A DNA stretch of 64,000 nucleotides from Dimorphilus gyrociliatus (lineage: Eukaryota > Animalia > Annelida): the NCBI GenBank assembly GCA_904063045.1, contig CAJFCJ010000004.1, positions 494,195-558,194 on the forward strand. The letters are read 5' to 3'. Below the pieces are notes generated by a model. The model worked only from the letters and a program-made list of their open reading frames with translations. It did no database searches and was not told the DNA's origin. The translations under genes were made by a program, and so were the position numbers. Below, piece after piece: positions 3,001 through 19,200 of the stretch (the stretch's first letter is position 1; each line of letters opens with the position of its first letter).

Positions 3001-3684
3001 GTGACTATATCCTACGGAGAATCTTTTGTCGTTTTGCCAAATTAGTCTTTATATAATTTTACTACTCTGTATAGCCCTTAGCTAAGTTGGAACTGTACAA
3101 CTGTACTATGATTTTCTAAGTTGAAAATTGTATTAGTTCCTTCCTACAACTCCCTTATTACAGATTGGAAAAAAGCTGAATAACCTTTCTAAAACCATAG
3201 TATTCTGTCCCTATCCACTTTTATTGCAGTACAAGATGAATTGAAGTCAATTAATAAAACAAGGACTTCCGTTTTCTTCCTTAAACTAAATTTCTAGCAT
3301 GGCTCAGCAAGGTAGATGGAGAATATCAAAGGGAAAACAACTTGGCGAGATAAGATTACAATAAAATATTTTTCCTTAGAAAAAAAGAACAATACACACA
3401 ATAATCACGTGATCAGGTGAAAAAAACGCCCACACCTGGTAAAGATACGAACATATTACATTTATGAGTGTATGAGTATACGTACATATTGGTATAATAT
3501 AGTAATATATAGTATATTTATAAATATATATACTTTTTATATATATTATTGTTTGATATAATGTGAAGATTTTCTATATCAAATATTTTATACGCCTACA
3601 AGATATGCATATTAGTAAAAACAAGCAAAAACATAATTACTATAGGGATTATGAACGAGTAAATAGACTTTTCTTTATATACTA

Positions 3685-6600
3685 TCAAGCATGGGATGAA
3701 TTATTGTACACATGTACAAATGAACCGGTTCGAGATAATTGAAAATCGTTCAATTTCATTTTCTCTGGTAAATCTTCAACAAATTCGGGTGTCTTCTCTT
3801 CTTTTTCTCGCTTTATTCGGACCCAATTAGCTCCCATACACATAAGGAAGTGCACCATACTTAAATTAATTAGTACAGATGCTATAAAAGCAGCTATTAA
3901 GTTGACTTGAGCACTTTTCAACTGTTTAAAAAATAGATTGAAGAACCAAACTAATATTTCTATACTTAGAAAAATTATAATACTTTTTCTAATATCGTCT
4001 TTAATAAATTAATTTTTAAATAAATGTAAAATATTACTGCTATAACAAAGCTATTTTTGTATAGTGGCGCCATCTTACTAAAATGAAAAGCGAATAAATG
4101 CAAAATAAATATACAAACTTTGGCACAAAAGAACACTTTAGCATCTGAACAATATGTGTTAGTGTTATTTCCGTCTTGTCTAATACCAAAATGTTGAGCT
4201 AACATAAGGAATGTTTCGTAAACGTTTACAATCTCATCTTTGGCTCTAGCAACAACGTTTGCTACTTGTTTAGCGTTTCTGCCAACTTCCCTTGCAGCGT
4301 TTCTTGCGCCTCTTAGAAAGCTTGTTGCTAATTTTCTACTATCCTTTAAGGCCTGTCTAGCCCATTTTACGCCCTCTCTCATTGCGCGTTCAATTATTTC
4401 ATCAGCTTTTCCAGCTAATTCTGCAGCTTTTTTAAATGCTGTCTAAAAAAATAAACAAGAGAAGAATGAATTTTTTTATACTATTATTATCCGATAGATG
4501 GAGTTTTATACAGAGAGTATTTTTCTCTATTAAGTATTAGGTTAAGGATGGACTTACATCAGCAAATTCAGTTGCTTTTTGGGCTGCTATTCTGGCCTCT
4601 TTTTCAGCTGTCTTCGCTAATTCCTTTGCCTTCTCATCCACCTCCATCCTTAATGCGTTAGCAGCCTCTTTAGCTTTTTTCCAAGCTTCTTCGGCTTTTT
4701 TCTTTGCTAATTCTGCTGTTTCTTTGGCTTTATCTCTCATATCTTCAGCAATTTTCTTTACCTGTTCAACTTTATCCTTTGCAAATTCCTCAGCCGTTTT
4801 TAATAATTTCTTGGTTTGATAAAGAACTTCTTTAGAACCTTTTTTTATAATTGCCAAGGTAGCATTCTTTAGAGGAACGATTTGAGCTTCTCCCCTCTTT
4901 ATCATCTCCTGTATATTCTTTGGAGCATCTTCTAAAGCTTTTCTTACTGCATCTTGATATTCCTTCATTTTTTCAACTGAATTTTTCACTTCTTTCTCAA
5001 TATTTTCTTTAGCTTCTTCAGCAAACTGCAATGCAGTTTTAAGAATGTGTTGGCTTTTTTTTAGAATTTCTTTTGTAGTTTTATGAATTAACTTTAGAGA
5101 CCCATCTTTCATGGTCTCTATTTCAGCCTTGCCATCTGCCAATAAGTCTTTTAGATCTTTAGATAAGGAGTTCCTAAAGTCTTTCAGTTCTTCAGCCTTC
5201 TCTTTTGCAAACTCTTCAGCAGTTTTTAAAAAAGACTTACTTTTATGTAAAATCTCCTGGCTCTCGGTATTAACAACTTGGAGAGAACCATCAGCCAAAG
5301 AGACTATTTTTGCTTTTCCATCTAAAACAAACTTTTTTAAATTTTCGGGTAAAAGTCGCCTATATTCTCTTAATTGCTCTTCCTGAAATTCTTCAACAGT
5401 TTGAAAGAGCTTTTCACTTTCATCAATTATTTCATTGGTTTTTGTATTTAAGACTTTTATAGTTCCTCCTTCGGTTGGATAGATTATTGCAGCTCCATCT
5501 TTAATTAGCTCTTTTATTTCTTCTGATAGTGTATCTCTGTAATATTTTATCTTTTCTGCTTTCTCGTTTGCAAAATCCTCTGCTGTTTTCAAATAATGAT
5601 CACTCATATGTAAAATTTCACCATCGCTAGTTCTTACGAGCTTAAATGTATTATCTGAAAGTTCAATAACTTTTGCCTCTCCTCTACTAAGCATATCTCT
5701 GTAATTGTCAGTTAAAGAATCCTTATATTCCTGCAGTGTCTCTTCTCTATAGCTGTCAAAGTCCCTCCTCCGCCGGTTTCCTAAAGGATTCCGACTTTCA
5801 TCCCATTGTTTCAATGTAGAATTTGCCATTCCAACAAACTTATCACCTACTTCCGATACCATGGCCTGCCACTGCTCGGTATCTATAGCATCTTGTACGT
5901 CATCTACCAATTTATCGAGTTCTTCTTCGCTAGGAAGCATCCCCTCAAACTGGGTGATTAATTTATCTAATACTCCGCTCTTTTCAACCTCAGTTAGGGT
6001 CTTTTCAACAGCTTTGGATGCCTCTTTAACTGCAGTCTCAACATGAGCTGGATCGAATGATTTAATTGCTCCTATTACAGACGCTGGGTTGAACTTTTCC
6101 ATGTGCTCGGGTTTAATACCGTAATCGGACAAATTAAAACAATCAGGGATCATCCCACAGACAACTACAAATACAGTAACTATCACAACAGGTATCAGTA
6201 AAATTGCTGGTAAGATTAGCCATAACAAATGTAAGCCATACGCGCTTAAAATAGCTAATACATGCTGGCATTTGGCAAAGAATCCCATACTATCCCCACA
6301 CCGAGCACAAGCCTCCTTCCTTGTATGACCCGTAAATAAGATAGCTAGGAACAAAAACCAACCAGCAGCCCCAATATGCATAAACATAACCAACCAGACA
6401 ATCTTTTTTACCCTAAAAAATAAATGTCAGTTATCTATTCGCTTGTAACAAAAGATAGTAATCTCTTACATATCAACTTCAAATTTCATAACGATGTATG
6501 AAAAGGCCGCATACAGACAAACGCAACAGATAACGGCTCCCGATACGCACATTGCAAAGGCGACAACCGATGCATATGGGACTCTTCTCATTTCGTGTTG

Positions 6601-7312
6601 GACGTCTTTCCATTCTGGTGCTGTTTGATAAAAAGCAAACTTGACTATTACCGCCCATCATTGAAAAAACTCTTATATGTTTCGTATCTATTATATCATT
6701 GAACTAGCCTTTGGGCAGTTTTGAAAATCAACATCAAAAATATATAATACACATTATATATACTATATATACAATGTATTGTATATAGTACAATATATAC
6801 TTTTTCTCTGATTTGCAAAGCGTCAGCTTGTTAACTTGAATATTATAAAATTAAAATAAAAAACAACAGTCTATTCAAAACTTTGACTAGACGAAACAAA
6901 AAAGTTATTTAATATTTTCAGGCGCCTCGTTTTCTATTTTTTTATCTATGTTAGATTCTCTCTCTCTCTCTCTTTCTCTCTCTCTCGCTCTATTTCTCTT
7001 TCTCTTTTCATTTGCAAAATGCATATATTTTAACGTAAGAAGCTAAAAGACGACCTTAAGAAGGAAAGTTTATAATCTTAAGCAAAGACGATGCAATATA
7101 TAATTTTATTACTTTACTAGTTAAAATTACTATGGAAACGTGATATATTAAACTTATACAAGATGGAATATGGAAGAATATTTATTAAAAATAAAGAAAA
7201 AACAATACAAACCGTCACTTTTGGTATTTCTGCATAAAAAGAAGTCTTTTGTCCTAGTCCAAAGGGACCTTGGTTTCTTTCTAGACCTTTGCTTTTCGTT
7301 TTTCGACGCCAT
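3685..7312 (-). CDS. M6/proteolipid (PLP/DM20/GPM6) family tetraspan protein with a giant second extracellular loop, about 888 aa, 5 exons
   Basis: Exons 7312-7213, 6620-6470, 6412-4558, 4442-4119 and 3921-3685 have GT-AG ends and consistent phases (1,2,0,0); total 2667 nt. Family motifs: RVPYASVVAFAMCVSG (TM1; cf. M6 IPYASLIA), TM2 HIGAAGWFLFLAILFTG, TM3 AYGLHLLWLILPAILLIPV, CFNLSDYGI (cf. CLDLRQFGI), TM4 SMVHFLMCMGANW (cf. AMVHYLMVLSANW). Four loop cysteines retained. Confidence 0.85.
4771..5727 (-). repeat. Five tandem ~60-aa coding repeats inside exon 3 of the M6-like gene
   Basis: The conserved Gly of the motif L..G.A.I....DG...V..T.T.EIL..S...LKT.EEF falls at residues 238, 300, 359, 421 and 501 of the 4537..6393 ORF (spacing 62, 59, 62, 80). 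Confidence 0.85.
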
Positions 7313-10300
7313 TAAAAGTTTCCAGGAGCCAACTGGATATAAAAATTTTTGTGTAAAAGGTTTTAGCACCGGCTGTTTATACAGTTAAAAATTTTACAAT
7401 TCTTTTTTTTCATCTGTTACAGCTTTGGTATCCATTGAACGGTGTTGAATATTTACAGTCGTTGGTTTCGATAGACGGTCTACTGGTATAACAAAAGAAT
7501 AATAACTGAATTAATAATAGAAAATTAGTCTATTTCAATCATTTGTATTAAGAATGAAATGTATTTTAAAAAAACATAATTTATATACACGATTCTAATA
7601 TGTTAATTTTGTACTATAAAATAACGTTTTGCAGTCGAATAGTTATAATATTCAATATTTTTGTAGGTTTGAAAGTAATATTGAACTGCAATTTTATATT
7701 TAAAAACAACGTAATTATTAATAAATTATGTTATTGATTAGGCGTAAAGTTGAAATTTTTATGCATCCTAACTATTAAGAAATACCATTTTACTACCTAT
7801 CTTTTTAAATTAAAAGTTTTAATACACCATACAAAATAGATATTCGCAAAAAGACAACGCCACCTTCTGGATTAATCGCTTTGTTTCTGGATTTATAACT
7901 CATATTTATAAAGCATAACAAGTAAAGTATTCTAATTGTTATTATTAATATTTAAATAGGTTAAATTTATACAAAATTACTGATTTCTTTCAAAATTGCA
8001 GTTTTTTTTTCTTGATTCTTTAAAAAATTTCTAAATATCGAACAGCGCCCTCTAGTTTTTGTTAACTTAGTTTTAATAGTTTCGATAAAGAGAGAATCAA
8101 CTTGATAGTGTATAAAACACTAAGCTAAACAAATCTCTTAGCAGAGAAGAAAAATGACTATATCTTCGCGTGAGAGGCGTCGATGACGTACGATACTGCA
8201 TCGTTCATCAGCCGGAAAATAGACGCCGCTGTTGCAGTCGAAACGGTTGCAGTTGGCGCGTGAAACAAACGTTGATTGGGTGCATGATTTATGAACCCCG
8301 AATTTTTTCTATTTTATGCATTAGTTCGCTTCCTTCTCATTTCATTGAAGAGTCCAACCCCCATTTCGGTCAGAAAAGAGAATTAAATCTATTGGAAAAT
8401 CTCTTTCACTCTTTTGTCCCAAAAGATTCGCTAATTCTAGGACCAAAGTAGATAGATTCATGTTCGGCATTGATGTATTACTTAATTTAATCAAGTTTCA
8501 TATAGAGTTAATTTTTTTCACAATATTACACAGAATAAATAAACTGTAAAGCAGATTCTGAGAGAAATGATACACTACTAGCAATGGTATCTCCATTCTC
8601 TTTATCACTAGAAACGAATGATGCATCGTTCTTCCAGCTGGACTATCAACGTGCTATCTGACAAACCGCAATTCCATTCTGTCTGCAGTAAGTGGAGGGT
8701 GGGGACTAAATACTCTAAAAGTAATATAAAATTGCTAAACAGTCTCGGAAAAGAAAGTGATAGAGATAGAGAGACAGAAGGACAGAGAGATATCAATTGC
8801 CTACTCATTCCTGGAAAGTTATATTAAAGCTAATTTGATTTTTTGGATGGGCGGAAAATTTTCCAGAGTAAGAGGGATAAAAGTGATAAATAGAGATTTA
8901 TATACGGTCGGCTAAAAAAAGAAAATAGTAGTCAATCAGAGATATAGATGTGCAAACGATTCGGAAACTGACGGTAGAAACAGGCATCTGTTTACTCTTT
9001 TGATAGACAGATTTATTTATATCTTTAGTTGACTTAAACTTTTCGATTTTTCGATTGTAAAATACAAATACCATTTTCCTATTTAAATAGTGTTTTTAGC
9101 CGAGTTTCCTGGAATTCTATAATGTAACATCACTAAAAGTATATTGTTTTTTATACTTCCCTTATCAGCATCTTATCCTCTTTCTGTGACTTCTAATATT
9201 ACGTGCTAAAAATAACTGTGTTATAGAACAGGAAGAAACTAAAAATATACGTACTCTTTTACAATAGACGTTTATGAGCGTCGGCTCTTCCGGGTCAATT
9301 ACATAATACAGACGCTTGAGTGCAGTTAATTTAGAAGCATACGAAAATACATACGAAAGCCAATTTCATGGTAAATCAAATAACGAAAAACTTATTTATT
9401 ATTACAGTTATTAGACGCAGGAACGGACAATCTTCCAATATTTTCTATTCTTCAACTGACCCAAATTCTAACTGAAAGAAAGGCGCTGAACTAATAAGGC
9501 ATATCTTAATATAGTACAAAGAAGACCTAAATCTATTCATTAATAAAAATAAGAGAAGAAAAAAAAATGTTTCTTTCAAAGTGACATTTTTACCATCTCT
9601 TAATGACGTTTCTCTTGTCCTTGAGGTATTTCATGTCAAGTTAGATTATTATTTTCTTTATTATTATCATTATTATTATTATTAATAACAATATTAATAT
9701 AATTATCACTAACTGACATTGCAGTATAAAAAAAATGAAATATGGAACTGTATTTAGTTAGTTTTCAGATCATTGGCGATTTAACGCATTAGAGTCTTAT
9801 TGAGAGTTTTGTTACAATTGTCTTGCAATCCCTAAGCTGAGTTAACAAACGGCGTCTCTGCCCGGGCCCATCAACACTAAAGCAAGCGAGTGAGAAAAAC
9901 AAACGCAATCAGACAGAGACGCCGGTCCGCAAGGGACGTTCAACGTGTGTGATTGATGAGAAGTGCACAAGAGGGCGCTGCCGAGGCGCCGAAGCTTATC
10001 TGAGATAGTGTCCCCCAAGACATTAGGGCTAGAGGCTGAATCTAAGGACTATATGTAGATAGGGTGTAATATGTATAAGTCTATGTACAACTGTACTTAA
10101 TCTTCTTTATCCCCCCTCTCCTTACTTGAGTTAGACGGAAAATCCCACCGAAGTAAACACATATATTATAAAGCGACTAGACCGGCCATTTACTGACCGA
10201 TTGCGGTTTAGACTCAATGAGGCGTCGCTCGAACCGTCTTGTATTAGACGCTTGATGAAGCATTGCAGGGCGAGATTGCGGCCGGCGGCCATCTTGATTT

Positions 10301-13300
10301 GTCGACCGATTATGAGAGGGGTTGAGAGAGGAAGTTTTCGAAATCTGAGTAGCGAAGAATTAAAGGCGTCGTTTCTAGAAATCGAATTATTTCAAAAATA
10401 CTACCGCTCTTCTCCTGTTTTTCCCCCTTCTTTTTATTCGATAAAGTAGATGGCTTTCTATTCTGTTTAGTTTTTAGGAGAATCTTTTTTTTCAAAATAT
10501 AGGCCTATTTTAGAGTGAATTAACTGACTGGCACGTCGACGATTATCAGTCTTGTGTTAAATTATAATATATATTCAGTTGAGTGGAAGAAGGAAGGATT
10601 GTTTTAAGGTATTAACTAATTCTCCCAATGCTCTTCCATCTTTTTCGAATGGCCAAAACGGTTTTGGACAATAAGGTAATATGTAATAAGAATAGTGAAA
10701 AAAGACAGAAAGACAGCAGTTGGACGCTTTAACGCGATTGTTTTCGACGCCCAAACAGACGAATGACGGGACCGTTTGTCTGCCTAAGCAGATTATCGGA
10801 TTACGATTCGGATTTTCGCGTCGCATATTTTTTACGTAATCCTTCAAAGAATGGAAAAAATTCCACGCTTCCCTTTCCGCATCCTCTTCCTCTTCCTAGT
10901 TCGTGTTCACTTCCTTGTTTCACTTCTTTCTTCAAGCGGTATCAAGGGAGTGTATAGGTATTTTGAGTCGCGCATGCGTGTATATCTTCCTTGTCATCCT
11001 TTTCCCATCTTAAAGACGAGCAGCACTTTAAAAAGCGCCATATGCCGCCCGGACGTCCCTTAGGAGACGGTCGTGATTCGCGTAAGGCACGCGTAACGTT
11101 CCCTTTTGTTATTCGCCCCTAAAATCGTCGCCTTTACGCCTTATTTCATTCTTGAGCAGTTTCTTTCACCTGCCATTCTTTTCTTCTCCAGCCAAACCTA
11201 TTCTTCTAACTCGTTCATTTTCATACTTGTATTTTCAAGTACATAGGCCGCTTTCATCACACCTAACTGCCATTACTTCCAAACTACCTATAACAAACTA
11301 ACTCTCACTTTTTATAATATCTTATCAAACATATTCAACTCCAAATGTCCTCTCCTTCTTACTTTTTTATGAAAAGGTATTTAATCATTTTGACATGATT
11401 GACGTTAATAATATTACGCAATTTTCTCTCTCATTTCCAAAATTATGTCAAGTTAGTTGAAAAGAAAGTATTATTTATCTTAAACATTTCTATTCAACTA
11501 TCGTTTAAAATATTTTAGATTTGGAAGAAGATATAGTAGAGAAAGCAAAATTATTCTTCCATAAGGACTTTTGAAGCAACGCTAAGAAATTTGTTTACGC
11601 TATGTTTAAGGCGTTGTGACGCCCTCACGTCGATTAGTCATACGATATGTTACTCTTTTTAAACAAGAAAATTGTTCAAAATGAACACAGAAGATTAAGA
11701 AATTGGCAAGAAATGAAAAAAATACATGAGTAAAGAACACAGCGAGAGAGAAAGAGAAGGGGAAAAGATAAAAAGAGAACAAATAATTGATTAATTGGTG
11801 TTAAATAACTCTTGTCATAATTGCAATAAAACTTGTATACTCTGCATACGAAATGAAGGAGGAAGGATAAGATGAAGGAGAAGGATGAAAGGAAAATTGA
11901 TAAAAAAAAGAATTTTTTTGAATAAATTGCCATATGTCCATGGAACAAATTCAAAAAGGATTTGTCACGGTCTAAAAAAAGAATACCTTTTATGTTTGTG
12001 TATAAAAAAAGCATGAATAATTATAAAAAATATATAAAAAGTGTTCACTGACCCTTTTATAAACTAGCCCATATTATTCTTTACTGTTTTGTTCAATTCT
12101 CGTATGCATTCGGGGCATGCCAACTCTTCTTTTTCATATATAAATATATAGGATTTAGAGTATGCGTAAGCTCTTGTGACAATAATTATTTCTACATTAT
12201 ATTGGGATTTGTCACATTCTCTTATATTCCCGAATTTACACCATCTCCCATTTCCATATAACGACAGCTGACTCTTCTTCAAATCCCCGAACGTCTGAAA
12301 AAAAATCTTGGAATATCATTTACTTAATTGACTTGTATTTTTTCTTGTTTATCTTTTTCCTTTAGACTCACTCATTCTCGTTCACTCATTTTATTCCTTC
12401 CTATCATATATTCTTATATAACTTAAAGTTTGCGTCATCCGTTTTTCTCCGAGAAACTAAAGGAAGAAATAAAATTGAGAAACAGACAGAAACGGAGAAT
12501 GAGATGGAAGCAGGGAATGAAATATTGACATTTATTTTATCTTGAATAAAGATTACTTAAGTTAAGCCAATTCTTCCGCTAACAAGCTATTAAGATAATC
12601 CTCCACTATAAGTAGACTAAGCTAAGAGGAAACAGGAGAACGGTAAATAGCAAAGTTATAACAGATAAGAATCTAATCAGTGCTGTATATCTGCTTGATA
12701 GTTCGTTATATCACATATGCGTGTGCAGATACAATTTGCAAATAGCGTTATTATTTCTGTAGCTATGAATAAAATTAATAGCCATATGAATATTCATCCA
12801 TTTTGATAATTTTAGTTTAGATTATTAAAATCTCTATAAGAATATCCTTTAATTTATTTCATAAGTATCCCTGATGCGCATGCGCTTTAAAAACTGAACC
12901 TTAGCTAAATCCTCTTCTCGAGTCCAATTTCGAAAAAATCGAATCGAAAACGAACTAGATAAATGTGACGCGCAACGTGACGCGCGCGCGGCGTCTAATC
13001 AAGTCTATCTGTCTCCATCTAGAAAGCGACGGCATTCGCCAGTTCGATACAATCTGCAATCGAACTTATAAGCTTCCGACTAGTCCATAGATACAGATTA
13101 TATTATATAGACTACCGAAACTGGCGCTTTAACTGTATTATTGTTACATATCACTACGAAAATGAAGTTTATAATTAAAAGCTGACAAATTTAGGCCTAT
13201 ATTTTTGAATAAATTATTTTCTATAAACATATTTATTTTCGACTATATTATAAAAAATACCGTTTCCTTCATAAAAATAGTAATATACATAATAATATAT

Positions 13301-14276
13301 GTATAATGTATATTATTTGTACTAAAAAACAATACACGCAGTTTCTCTCCACCAATAGAAACTTTCTAACTTAGCTGAAAATAGAGGTCGCTAAGGTTGT
13401 TGAGCGACGCGCGGCACTTTCACCCTCTTCTCTTTTTTTACTCTCTTTTAAAAATTCAGGGCCATTCAATACGTAGATAGAGACGCCTATATATCCTATG
13501 AGTATCATATAGTATGGAAAAAGAAATAAAATGTAACATTGATAAAGGATACGATTTCCCGTCTTAACGCCTCGTTATATTTATATATAAAATATCGCTT
13601 GAGGCTGGGTTTTCTTACTATAAAAATCATATTTTTATGTCTTTTTAACTGTGGGGCATACATGAATTGCTTTATTAACTCCCATTTAGCCTATACAGTA
13701 TGTTCTTTAGCTTTTTCATATGAATTTACATAAAATATCTCTTGTTATGTTAATATAGACTAAGACAGGAAAGAGAAATAGATTAAAAGATGCTATTCAA
13801 TAGAGCAAAAATGGAAAAACTCGTTTAAAGTAAAAATGTTTCTTTCCTATATGTTTTCTCCGTCGTCACTTGTTCCTTGTTTTGTTTTTTACTATTAGTT
13901 ACATAAGAATATGACTTAGGGCAAACTTTGCAGTGTCGCCAATCACAGACTGTCTTTAAAAATAAGTTTATCATCTATGTTTTCCTTTTTTTTTCATTTA
14001 TAAGTAAAATAAACAAAAAAGAAGACAAACTAGGATAGAGGGAGAGAAAACAAACTGTACAGCCTTCTAATTAACATTCTATAATTGCTGTAGGCAAATT
14101 TTTCGAAAAGCTAATTTCTATAAAAATCCTTAATTTAGTCTATTTATTGACCTAATTTTGTTATTTTACAGATTTATGATAATATAAACTTAAAGTTTGT
14201 AATATAGAATACAAGGTACAAACATATAGTGCATAGATGGTAATATATATATATATCGATTATATACTCGGATACA

Positions 14277-14278
<2 letters not shown>

Positions 14279-14308
<30 letters not shown>
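14279..14308. repeat. (TA)15 microsatellite
   Basis: Read directly from the sequence. Confidence 0.9.
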
Positions 14309-14312
<4 letters not shown>

Positions 14313-15643
14313 TTTATTTATGTTTAGTTTGTTTGAGAAAATCTCAGTTATCTCTTTTTTGTGTTTAGATATTTCATTCAATTTTTCATTTTATCTTCCC
14401 AAAAGGAAACACCGCCTTAGGTTATATTAAGCTAATCTAAAATATATTTAATTTTGGCCTATATATTTTCCTATTTTCCTATATTAGCCCTCTCCATTTG
14501 ACTCTATATTATTTTCATTCTTTCCCTCATACGATGCTTTAAGGTATTGTAGGAAATAGGATTTTTATGTCGTTAGCCATGTACGTAATTAATAATTTTA
14601 AGTATAATCTTAAGTTAATCGCTATTATGTGTGTGGTGCATAAGGTTCCAACAGACCGAAAATTCGCGACTTTCATCTTTCCTAGATTGCGTAATAATCC
14701 CATTTATACATAATATTAAGCCTATAAATATACGGATTATCTTTGTACCAGTTTTAAGTATAAAAGAGGATGGATCAAAAACGTTTCCATCTCGTTCAAA
14801 AATGTTCGTGGAAGGTAACGAGCGACGAATAAGATATTTAAACTATATTCAATTATATAACTGAACTATAATGACTAGAGGTAACGCCTGTTTTTATTAG
14901 GTGCTAATCATTGACGTATAAATATTTAGACCCACAAATCCATTTGATTATCTCCCGTACAAACCGATAACGACAGCCTGTTCGTACATAATTTAGTAAG
15001 CCCACCCTTTCACGTTTCACCGCTATCATGTTCGGTAAATTGCTTCAATACAAGAAAAATTCCTACCTCCTTATCCAAAAACTATTCTATTTATGATACA
15101 TAGTCTCCAAACTTTATACTACATATAACAAGTAAATTTGATCCTCCGACCCTCTCCACATCTGGTGCCATTCCTTTCGAATGAAAGAGAATTCCTTATC
15201 ATAGGAGGGGGGAAGGCGATTTGGTGGGTGGAGAAGGAGGAGGATAGTGAAGGGGAATTTTCTAGTTAATCCTATTTAAAAGAAGCTGGAAGAGTCAGAA
15301 TGTTGGGAAGTCGAGTGTTATAATTTTGTTTTTACTATCAACTAGTACATTTGTTTGTACAAGTAATTTACATATTATATTACAGAGGAAAAAAGAACAA
15401 CCAAATAAATACCAAACTACCTTGAATCGTTTTAATCTCTATACGGTAAACATATGAAGTAATGAAAATTTGAGTTCTTTTAAACGAATAAGTATATAAT
15501 GCAGACTTTTTCGTTAGAATAATACTGTATGCATATGCATATGTTAATTATCATAAAATATAGAAAAGACAAACTTCTCTCGAAAAAAGGAAAAGTTTTT
15601 TTTTTTTGAAACGTTCTCTCTCTTCTTTTTAAAATAGACTATG

Positions 15644-16108
15644 TTAGACGTCAATTCGATCCATTCTCGGTCTTTTAACATCAGGTGCGAAACTTGACGA
15701 TGGCGATGTGGTCGAGGCGGCATTCGACGGTGAACGAGGGAAATTTGGGAAGACGTTACCATCAGTTCCGGTTGGGGAGAGATGGCCGAAATTGCCTCCA
15801 GCGTTCATATAGGCGATTAATCTGCGCAATTCTTCTAGGGCATTAGCTTGCATTAGTATGTAATTCTTGGCTAGTAGTAGAGTTGCGATCTTGCTCAATT
15901 TCCTTACGGACGGTGAATGAGCATAAGGTATAACGCTCCTCAGTTCGTCTAGGGCATCGTTCAGATCATGCATTCTTCTCCTTTCCCTGGCGTTTATGTT
16001 TAATCGTACAGTTTTCTGTGCTCCTGGTTTAATTTGCTTTTGTTCGTCAATATCATCAACACTAATTTCTTCTTCGTCGAAAAGTGGAGAGTCTGGCGAT
16101 GTTGACAT
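15644..16108 (-). CDS. BHLHE22: Beta3/Olig-class bHLH transcription factor (BHLHE22/23-like, Drosophila Oli-like), single exon, 154 aa
   Basis: b[69 protein letters not shown] is nearly identical to the BHLHE22/23 domain as I recall it. First ATG is at 16108; the ORF-track start at 16135 is TTG. Confidence 0.93.
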
Positions 16109-16219
16109 GACTGCTGGAAGACGTTTGACGGCCAAGGAGGAGACGCGAGTGCCACCAGACGGAGCTGTTGACCGAACATCTGCCCTGATTTTTCCCTTTA
16201 CCCAGCTCTTTTTCTGTCA

Positions 16220-16227
16220 TTTTTATA
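16220..16227 (-). promoter_or_regulatory. Candidate TATA box (TATAAAAA) of the bHLH gene
   Basis: Minus strand reads GGTATAAAAATG about 115 nt upstream of the ATG. The transcription start is unknown. Confidence 0.3.
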
Positions 16228-19200
16228 CCGTATTAAAACTGTCTTTCGGTAGGATGAACGCGTAAGATTATAGGATATCCGAGATGACCGAAGCTTATTC
16301 CATTTTCCCTTTTCTAGTCTTTAATTTACTTTACAATGGAACCTTGAAGCAGTAAGACAGCACAAAGAAAAATGAAATATTACATAATCCACCGTAAAAT
16401 CTTCCATTCAACCTAATAGATTTGATAAATAACGCGTAGCAGTTTGACATTGAAAGATGTCACGTTCAAGAGTATGGAAATAGATATTTCCGATAGTTAA
16501 GAGGAACAGATTGAACGCTGTCATTCGATATCTAACCAGGACTGGAAGGTAAATGGACTTAAGACTTATCACAAAGAATATCGTAATTCAAGATGACCGA
16601 AACGCTGACCTGAACGTTCTCCCATTTGTTCAAAGGTTAGGAAATTCTATAAAGACAGAATCTGTTCTTTGCCCCTAACTCAGACGGTTTTGATCATTTG
16701 ATATTCTAGAATCTGTCGTATATAACTAAAGTCTTTTGAATGGAAAGTAGAAACATTAACGCCCAATCAGTAGGTGGTAAGAAGTTCATGTGGGTGGTAT
16801 TGAATCTGTAAAAGAGGTGGAGATGACATAAAGAGACGTTCAAATTATACGATTTACTAAATGCCACCGAGTCAACGGTTTGGCATGATGTCATTAAAAT
16901 TAGGAGAATTTCGTTGTGTAAAAAGATCGAATAGCGGAGCTAATCTTATTGACAGGATTAAGCGATCGAAACGAAACAATAGAATAATAAAAAAAAGGGA
17001 CGTTTATTTCTCCTTTATCAGAGTTTCTTTCATTTGCTATTTGTTACGATTAATATGCCTTATTCCATATCAAAAAGATCGATTAAGGGGTCGAGTACCT
17101 GGTCGGGTCAGGAATTGGATGGGTCAACAGGTCAATAAACTATAGTAACCCATTTTACTTCAGCATCACGGGGGTTTGAAAAATTTTGATCACAAAGGTG
17201 ACATCAATTGAGAATTTTCCATTGTGAAATTCCATCCTTCTATTCAAATCATACAACAAATGTTACTTTAAGGGAATTTTAGTTATTTTAGTTATTATAC
17301 GCAGCTTTTTCAAAAATATAACGATAAGTTATAGAAAAACATTTTTAAGATTAACCGATTAAGTACAATACATAAACCAACTGCAACAAAACCACGCATC
17401 TTTAATAAATCGGCTAGAAACGAAATCGCTCTGTACGTGACAGCCAATGTCCTAATACGATTACACAACAACCAAGACCGTGACGTAATCGAATCCAACA
17501 AACGTCTGCCATATCACTTCTCCCATCGTCGATTTCATTTTATTATTTTTATTGAAATAAGCCTATAATATGGCAAAAAAAGTTCCTCCGAGATATATCT
17601 TAATCTGGGGGAATGATCTGTTTGAAAGCGCTCGATGATCCTTGAAAGAATAGAAAAAAAGAAGGGGGTGGAGAGTATGCAAGTTGAAAAGCATCTAAAG
17701 GAGTTGGGCGGCCATATGGCACGATTTTTTAGCAAGAATACTCTAAAAAAAAGCAGGGAACTGGTACCCATTATTTTGGGTGCTCACCGTAAGTTTCCCT
17801 CTCTTTGGGCTGCCGCTCTACCACTTTAAGAGAGGCATTCGATGCTGTTTTCTTCTTTCGACCGAAGCGCACACAATGGACCCATCTGGCGCAGCGTCGC
17901 CAATCACTTTAGCAACATAAGCGCGTTAGGGGCGTTACAATATGGCGAGGCGGCGTCGCTAGCGCAATCAGGCGCGTTGACCAGCTGCGGCTCGGAATGA
18001 GTCTCGGAAGAGATTTGTATACGAGAATAGTTTACGATTGTTTCATCTTGTTTACTCCCCACCTTCTCACTCCCTCTTGGTCTCTTTTTCATCGAGTATG
18101 CTTCATTGGTGCTAGTGATTCTTAACTTATTAGTCCAAGAATAGAAATTGACAAGTGAATTGTCTGCCTTTAATAGAAAATCAAAATTAGCTATTGATTT
18201 TATAATATCTTTGAAATGGAGACATTAAAAGGGAATTTTCTTCATAATTAGGAAAAGAATTTAAAGCTTTTGAACTATGAGAAGGGGATACATAAGATTA
18301 GAGAAAGGATTTATAGGACCCGATCATATTTAGAGTGGGGGAGGAGAAAGAGAAGGAAAGAAAAAGGGTAAAGGGGAGGAGGAAGGGGGATTTTGAAATA
18401 TTGACTGACTGTTGATTGCGATATAGCGGTACTAAATTTTATGAAAGCTCCTGATGAGCCAGGAATTCGGAACAATTTAAGCAAAATGACCTAAATATCG
18501 CCAAAGGAATGATTCTTTTTCGAAGGAATTTTCTTCAGAAAACAACCTATTCTTATTGGTTTGGCTTTGTCCATAAATAAACACAATATTCGAATAAAAT
18601 GATAGGTTACCAGTCTAGCCGTAAGGATAAAATAACATATCTAATTGGAGATTAATTTGATAAAGAGGCAACTAACAGGTTTAAAAGCGTTAAAAAAAAT
18701 AAGAAACACAGATTTCCACGCTTTGCGGTTCTGACAGAAAGTAAAAAAACTGCGGTTTCGATAGATGCAGCTAAACGACTCTCGGAAGAGATTTGTTAGA
18801 CGTCGACGAGGCGTCGCTTATCGCGACGTTTATCGCTTAGACAGTAGCGTCCACGCGCTCGTAAAGTGACGCCTCGATGACGTAACGGCCGTGACTTCAA
18901 TCGCCAATCGCCCTTAAACGCCGCCGAATTAGACGGCAAAGCGGGACGTCCCGCCGGAACGAGTGGCCTTGTTATGATGCTCGTTTATAGACGCGTTGAC
19001 GTTGGTGAGGCGTCGCCCAGGATAATTCTATATACTTTGCTGTTTGCCGCCTGTCAAACTGACGATAGATTTCTTTTCTCTACGTATTCCCTCCTCTTTA
19101 TTTTCTTTCTATTTATATAGTAAAAATGCATTCAGTATATATACATGTGTATATACATATGCATATATTATATCGAGAGAAACACGGATAAGGAAAAAAA

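Follow-up and report, generated by a model that had tools for sequence, protein, structure and literature searches.

Proteolipids of the PLP/M6 family (PF01275), comprising PLP1/DM20, GPM6A/GPM6B and Drosophila M6, share four transmembrane (TM) segments, a short first extracellular loop (EC1), a TG-x-TR loop, four cysteines in the second extracellular loop (EC2) and a conserved TM4. They have been studied as compact tetraspans with a short, function-essential EC2, in the context of myelin apposition and of filopodium and synapse formation. In flies, M6 acts at tricellular junctions, and in PLP the EC2 disulfides join Cys1 to Cys4 and Cys2 to Cys3 (C200–C219). Family members measure about 190-320 amino acids (aa), the Drosophila M6 isoforms 187-319 aa, and the EC2 cysteines of mouse M6a are C162, C174, C192 and C202, with 18 residues from Cys2 (C174) to Cys3 (C192) (PMC3438117). 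These proteins reside at the cell surface with cytoplasmic N and C termini and a disulfide-bonded EC2, and two N-terminal cysteines of M6a are palmitoylated (PMC3438117). Here, we describe a gene from the annelid Dimorphilus gyrociliatus, located in a 64,000-nucleotide (nt) stretch of contig CAJFCJ010000004.1 (positions 494,195 to 558,194; referred to as the window, whose numbering is used throughout), that encodes a PLP/M6-type protein with an EC2 of about 645 aa.

Compared with PLP/M6 proteins, the product is far longer, at 888 aa with a 624-residue stretch between Cys2 and Cys3, and its core is divergent, lying outside canonical M6 in a phylogenetic tree. This size mismatch is a point of difference and offers no ground to exclude homology. 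The best explanation overall, which we consider probable from the sequence comparisons below, is a conserved PLP/M6 core carrying a disulfide-closed helical ectodomain, with membrane spacing or adhesion as its most likely role.

Gene structure and the proteolipid core

Five exons on the minus strand (7312-3685; Table 1) form one coding sequence of 2667 nt encoding 888 aa, with GT donors and AG acceptors throughout, consistent phases and introns of 592, 57, 115 and 197 nt. The Pfam profile Myelin_PLP gives a split match to the annotated 845-aa version of this protein (50.1 bits, E 3.9e-13, cut-off 23.8), in which aa 1-128 align with profile positions 8-148 and aa 744-806 with positions 165-229 (845-aa numbering). 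Each half also matches alone, at 32.7 and 31.3 bits, and the 17 profile positions between them (148-165) are stretched across about 615 residues. Kyte-Doolittle windows delineate four hydrophobic clusters (aa 47-82, 87-112, 134-179 and 814-841), leaving an EC1 of about 16 aa. Further conserved family features include R-V-P-Y-A-S before TM1, TG-x-TR after TM2 and C-x7-C immediately before TM4. An N-terminal cysteine, C27, is not in the C-x-x-C setting that usually precedes R-x-P-Y-A, and the same holds for C25 and C27 of the orthologue L001 described below.

All four EC2 cysteines are present, and are kept in L001. No other cysteine occurs between TM3 and TM4, such that the 624-residue Cys2-Cys3 interval contains none. 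In an alignment with normal-length M6 proteins, the insert falls between Cys2 and Cys3, and hence at the tip of EC2, between cysteines that are paired in PLP. In eleven normal-length relatives, the distance from the conserved Gly after Cys2 to Cys3 is 8-24 residues.

The first-pass annotation of this DNA had joined four open reading frame (ORF) fragments and an exon at 6620-6470, read in a frame different from that of the overlapping 6479 ORF, into the 888-aa protein, and had assigned it four PLP/M6-type TM segments with about 645 residues between TM3 and TM4. The splice sites and phases fit this assembly, including the change of frame, and hydropathy agrees with the proposed topology. Its expectation of a Myelin_PLP match divided between the two ends of the protein also held, above threshold.

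Could the long loop have been created by gene prediction? An M6 gene might have been wrongly fused with other material, be it a retained or repetitive element or parts of two or three genes, and read-through of exon 3 to a stop seven codons beyond its donor is possible. However, exon 3 holds in one open frame the PLP-type TM2-TM3 region (Pfam profile 81-148), Cys1-Cys2 and the insert, and exon 4 physically unites an insert-type helix with the PLP-type end of EC2 (Cys3-Cys4). Because both exons fuse insert to PLP parts, only the phase-0 junction between them must be trusted. The same order of parts recurs at six other loci, the orthologue L001 shows strong purifying selection without an indel in the insert, and the junctions of the public annotation are identical to ours. 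Together with the word shares given below, which equal the exon fractions, these observations bring an artefact close to being refuted.

The public record and transcript data bear on the same junctions. The 618-codon exon is a 100% match to the NCBI protein DgyrCDS2779 (P0001; Dimorphilus gyrociliatus, 845 aa, unnamed, with PF01275 on record), which uses junctions 6470/6412, 4558/4442 and 4119/3921 and starts at a Met in exon 2, without exon 1. The annotation behind it weighted PASA transcript assemblies 10x relative to ab initio predictions (PMC7854359). We further determined word shares, the fraction of a stretch's sampled words found in sequencing runs. For 3600-7400, run X1 contains 0.70 of the sampled words, equal to the exon fraction. 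For 3922-4557, spanning intron 4, exon 4 and intron 3, runs X1, X3, X4 and X5 each contain 0.47, the exon-4 fraction, compared with 1.00 in a genome-source run. As indirect evidence, these shares fit spliced transcripts free of introns 3 and 4. Neither of the contrary outcomes that had been named beforehand was seen: the PLP profile matches both ends of the protein, and the word shares are compatible with loss of both introns.

The sequence is thus already public as an unnamed prediction, and only its reading is new. Our literature search found no paper on such a long-loop proteolipid or on the DgyrCDS2779 gene, and neither the gene nor the family is listed in the supplements to the genome paper. 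In this sense, the first-pass statement that no described proteolipid is known to have this architecture stands, with the qualification that the protein is recorded in NCBI as a PF01275 prediction.

The comparison with L001 supports an additional first coding exon of 33 codons, which corrects the public 845-aa model. The ATG and GT donor of exon 1 are kept in L001, and the 24 nucleotide differences are distributed 3/6/15 by codon position, with a proportion of nonsynonymous differences (pN) of 0.12 and of synonymous differences (pS) of 0.75. Conservation of exon 1 as mere non-coding sequence was considered and ruled out by the third-position bias and by the L001 frame upstream of the ATG, which is disrupted by an indel and stops. 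The 120 nt 5' of the start codon (7313-7432) are 84-87% identical to L001, above the coding exons (74-85%) despite the broken frame, and are probably a conserved promoter or 5' untranslated region element.

Two further observations concern this region. Intron 1 contains a (GA)n/(CT)n microsatellite, about 50 nt long (6945-7000). In addition, 13-16% of the sampled words of 3922-4557 occur in two runs of one study, a marine metagenome from 2025 and a metatranscriptome; these environmental data contain D. gyrociliatus or a close relative.

Table 1. Features of the D. gyrociliatus long-loop gene, in window positions; residues are numbered on the 888-aa model.
Feature	Position	Strand	Description
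Exon 1	7213..7312	-	aa 1-33 + 1 nt; cytoplasmic N-terminus, polybasic, one juxtamembrane Cys
Exon 2	6470..6620	-	R-V-P-Y-A-S motif and TM1; Pfam Myelin_PLP profile 8-39, E 1.9e-5; AG acceptor, GTAAGA donor
TM1	~6511-6582	-	hydropathy
Exon 3	4558..6412	-	618 codons; TM2, intracellular loop with TG-x-TR, TM3, Cys1/Cys2, bulk of insert
TM2	6334..6405	-	aa 87-110; hydropathy, aligns with TM2 of normal-length M6 proteins
TM3	6157..6264	-	aa 134-169, long, ends at Cys1; hydropathy; 48-64% identical to TM3 exons of L002-L006
Cys1-x5-Cys2 (C169, C175), conserved N-L-S sequon, L-S-D-Y-G signature	6118..6159	-	start of insert
Head module	5776..6117	-	aa 183-296; helical; conserved across subfamily (A1); 86% aa identity to L001, pN 0.07
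R-R-R-R furin-type motif	5764..5775	-	directly after head; kept in L001
Five tandem ~60-aa repeats	4708..5685	-	aa 327-388, 389-448, 449-510, 511-590, 591-652; each beta-meander then helices
Tail module	4179..4776	-	aa 630-790, across intron 3; ~160 aa, A/K/E-rich, amphipathic helical, conserved up to Cys3
Exon 4	4119..4442	-	108 codons; tail end of insert and Cys3-x7-Cys4 PLP motif
Cys3-x7-Cys4 (C800, C808)	4125..4151	-	conserved N-x-T sequon just before
Exon 5	3685..3921	-	TM4, cytoplasmic C-terminal tail, stop codon; Pfam Myelin_PLP profile 195-229, E 8.7e-6
TM4	3829-3912	-	within exon 5

Conservation and spread of the long-loop form

An orthologue that matches in all five exons, splice sites and phases lies on L001, a 19-kb contig of a related worm, assembled from SRR23372228. 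The orthologue's product of 887 aa is 74% identical to that of D. gyrociliatus (exon 3, 73%; exon 4, 75%; exon 5, 80%), and the sole indel is one residue at the extreme C-terminus, with none in the insert. Within the insert, pN is 0.16 and pS 0.73 (saturated), with differences of 177/97/411 by codon position. The saturated pS, low pN and third-position bias together indicate that the insert is translated and constrained along its whole length. Judged from these alignments, retention of exons, splice sites, phases and insert length at saturated synonymous distance is far beyond chance. The D. gyrociliatus locus is a genuine gene under selection and a divergent member of the PLP/DM20/M6 family.

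HMMER, run in full against 1.84 billion representatives, retrieved 24 proteins with E up to 0.001. Ordinary M6-like proteins of 194-313 aa match only the ends of the query; their named sources are nemerteans, a tardigrade, a nematomorph, a nematode and lampreys. The insert is matched by several unannotated ORFs (P0003, P0004, P0005, P0013 and P0014), and a profile search with the insert alignment A1 yielded only P0004 and a 93% copy among the matches listed. The long-loop architecture is present in at least seven further assemblies, six of them read at the DNA level (L001-L006) and one, represented by P0003 and P0026, known from protein sequence. P0020 and P0021 (508 and 804 aa, with long N-terminal extensions) were considered as long-loop forms and rejected, as their EC2 is of normal length.

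The DNA-level loci repeat the arrangement of D. gyrociliatus. In L002, L003, L005 and L006, exons for TM1, TM2 and TM3 are followed by insert exons of 500 to >700 aa, and L004 provides a TM3 exon and insert. The TM3 exon ends with C-x5-C and L-S-D-[YF]-G in L002, L003 and L006, with L-S-E-Y-G in L004 and with P-S-E-L-G in L005. In both L002 and L003, the insert closes with G-x-D-T-[YF]-C-x7-C and is followed by a TM4 split by an intron. The first-pass annotation had called for a search for long-loop relatives, and all of L001-L006 have the same order of parts. Its central proposal, a PLP/M6 tetraspan serving as the anchor of a very large EC2, is upheld by the split Pfam match, the four retained EC2 cysteines, purifying selection and the seven further assemblies. 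As far as found, the protein represents a conserved, so far undescribed variant of a well-known family, present well beyond D. gyrociliatus.

A maximum-likelihood tree of membrane cores unites four long-loop sequences as a clade (90/95). The neighbours of this clade are short nemertean proteins (99/96), and canonical M6-like proteins stand separately (96/91); given long branches and an arbitrary root, the nemertean grouping is provisional.

The surroundings and exon structure of the other loci supply additional observations. In L002, the long-loop M6 gene is followed, about 3.5 kb downstream, by an intronless ORF of about 880-906 aa (15693-18413) for an ebony-like adenylation enzyme (AMP-binding), whose homologues also have a carrier domain and whose closest named relatives are from Capitella teleta (50%), Lineus (41%) and Owenia (40%). 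Because this neighbouring gene is closest to that of Capitella teleta, the L002 organism is probably an annelid. Directly downstream of the long-loop gene of L005, on the opposite strand, is an apparently intact set of ORFs (9985-16578) resembling a long terminal repeat retrotransposon, with aspartic protease, RVT_1, RNase H and integrase. In both D. gyrociliatus and L001, a single exon of 1855 nt (exon 3) covers TM2, TM3 and the bulk of the insert, and TM4 is unsplit. In L002 (7712-11575) and L003 (1822-5879), by contrast, these parts occupy separate exons, and TM4 is interrupted at I-N-L-S-M / V-H-F-L-M. The lineage of the compact genome seems to have lost at least three introns.

Anatomy and possible role of the insert

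Alignment of six members (A1 for the head, A7 for the tail) divides the insert into a conserved head next to Cys2, a lineage-specific middle and a conserved amphipathic helical tail next to Cys3. Basic R-x-[KR]-R motifs like that following the head are seen in the middle of L003 (RTKR) and P0005 (RYRR) as well.

In D. gyrociliatus, the middle consists of tandem repeats that are 24-48% identical pairwise, each closest to its positional partner in L001. An AlphaFold2 model of one repeat unit, with ten copies as the alignment, has three short strands and two helices at a predicted local distance difference test score (pLDDT) of 78.7. Foldseek searches with this unit against PDB and AFDB clusters gave best E values of 0.09-0.23, to single propeller-blade-like beta-meanders only, and no Pfam family matches the repeat at threshold. 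The possibility that the repeats are common to the whole subfamily was rejected, as the repeat hidden Markov model (HMM) matches only L001 and none of L002-L006; elsewhere the middle is rich in sequons or, as in L003, in Ser and Pro. The repeat HMM also detects a partial unit, the helix half only, before repeat 1 (window 5686-5763, aa 301-326; L001 ORF residues 237-261), and the array may once have had six units.

The hydrophobicity of the tail has a period of 3.64 residues, with a Fourier power of 327 against a shuffled 95th percentile of 78. The same peak is found in five members (including L001, P0003, P0004 and P0005), at 3.62-3.66 residues and a power of 184-327, or 4-6x the shuffled maximum. 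This period is near 11/3, not the 3.5 of heptad coiled coils. For the protein as a whole, phmmer against PDB sequences gave nothing better than E 0.089, and in the ESM Atlas the best scores were 0.52 by features and TM 0.21 by structure. The nearest named cluster in that atlas, at a score of only 0.52, comprises 84 Myelin_PLP-domain proteins from flatworms, about 415 aa in length and longer than ordinary M6, which may be another enlarged form. Alignments A2/A3, which combined the long protein with normal-length M6 proteins or fragments, were misaligned by MAFFT and not used for folding, and a shifted-repeat alignment (A6) collapsed onto identical overlaps.

On the preferred reading, the insert would face outward, in line with family topology, the flanking disulfide cysteines and the sequons conserved next to Cys2 and Cys3. 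N-x-S/T sequons are also abundant in the inserts of P0003 and P0005, numbering 15 and 14, respectively. The low number in the D. gyrociliatus insert, only four, would suit a different arrangement, in which the insert lies on an internal membrane or adopts an unusual topology, its amphipathic helices covering a cytoplasmic or luminal surface in a perilipin- or LEA-like manner; a periodicity of 11 residues is typical of the amphipathic helices of cytoplasmic proteins that bind lipid droplets and membrane surfaces. We consider this very unlikely, however, given that the insert, itself cysteine-free, is flanked by the four EC2 cysteines, which are disulfide-bonded in PLP/M6, that sequons are conserved at both of its ends and number 14-15 in other members, and that the basic N-terminus and TG-x-TR loop fall on the opposite side, as in the PLP/M6 family.

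With the insert outside, the two family disulfides would tie both of its ends together at the membrane. The head and tail could then run antiparallel as a helical stalk, with the variable middle at the tip. A proprotein convertase may cut at the conserved R-R-R-R after the head, generating two disulfide-held chains. The tetraspan would organise the membrane and present a helical ectodomain, rod-like and partly glycosylated, for membrane-membrane or membrane-matrix spacing or adhesion.

The amphipathic tail permits another function for the same architecture. As the main rival to spacing or adhesion, the ectodomain may be a membrane-tethered lipid or lipoprotein binder, its tail resembling an exchangeable apolipoprotein whose bundle opens on lipid surfaces for lipid capture or transfer. 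The coherent 3.64-residue period extends over about 160 residues in all members tested, nearer to 11/3 than to 3.5. Weak Pfam matches recur, to ApoLp-III (E 3e-4 and 2e-3) and, in three of six members, to Apolipoprotein A1/A4/E (best E 4.4e-5), and PLP-family proteins are cholesterol-associated. In contrast, the ApoLp-III scores (18.6-21.4 bits) lie under the Pfam cut-off of 36.3, and a search of the PDB with the tail profile returned designed helical bundles first and apolipophorin-III only at E 0.84, so that the resemblance may reflect composition and helicity only. We therefore regard lipid binding as possible but unlikely.

Several points weigh against the preferred reading of a disulfide-closed stalk for spacing or adhesion. 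The whole-protein AlphaFold2 model is unreliable (pLDDT 43.6; predicted template modelling score, pTM, 0.24) and was excluded from the fold search, so that stalk geometry remains inferred. Topology, disulfides, glycosylation and cleavage are likewise deduced from sequence, and the basic motif does not occupy aligned positions across distant members. Support for the exon junctions is indirect, and an annelid source of the other loci is hinted at by just one neighbouring gene, for one locus.

A more far-reaching version, somewhat less probable again than lipid binding as such, combines several of these elements: an annelid-wide proteolipid subfamily with a modular, convertase-processed EC2 tip, in which the tail would be a tethered, apolipoprotein-like lipid-binding bundle. 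If true, this would link cholesterol-associated PLP/M6 organisers directly to extracellular lipid capture or to the bridging of apposed membranes. It would also offer a possible invertebrate analogue of the membrane-apposing role of PLP in myelin, arising from a different part of the same protein.

For the family as a whole, a conserved subfamily with a roughly ten-fold larger EC2 shows that the disulfide-closed tip tolerates, and can evolve, a large modular insert. The long-loop subfamily thus represents a natural experiment on EC2 function. It also provides a new repeat unit without a recognised fold, in a compact, tractable animal suited to testing.

Comparison with other membrane and lipid-binding systems

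By language-model features, the nearest named clusters include Prominin, Tweety/TTYH and DC-STAMP-type multipass proteins (scores 0.45-0.52), which have long helical ectodomains built from loops between TM helices. Scores below 0.9 are leads only; neither sequence nor fold gives a match, and these proteins belong to other families with other numbers of TM segments.

Exchangeable apolipoproteins (apolipophorin-III, PF07464; apoA-I/A-IV/E, PF01442) share with the tail their long amphipathic helices and a period of about 11/3. However, they are soluble and secreted, whereas the D. gyrociliatus tail is part of a membrane-protein loop; the ApoLp-III matches are sub-threshold, and PF01442 gave no match in the first member. 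On the strength of these scores and of the distant PDB match, the resemblance is best regarded as analogy, not membership.

Tetraspanins have no sequence relationship to the protein and no Pfam tetraspanin match was obtained. The likeness is one of design, as they too combine a four-pass anchor with a disulfide-closed EC2 and a lineage-variable region between conserved cysteines. Their large loops measure about 80-130 aa, compared with 645 here.

Among proteins of normal length, the membrane core is closest to short M6-like proteins of nemerteans, those of Tubulanus polymorphus (XP_074654865.1, 222 aa; E 5e-9) and Lineus longissimus (XP_064637827.1, 257 aa; E 2e-8). The Lineus protein has a G-L-E-P motif after Cys2 in common with the long-loop form, and C-x10-C instead of C-x7-C before TM4. 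Both nemertean proteins lack the insert, with 8-12 residues from the G-L-E-P point to Cys3.

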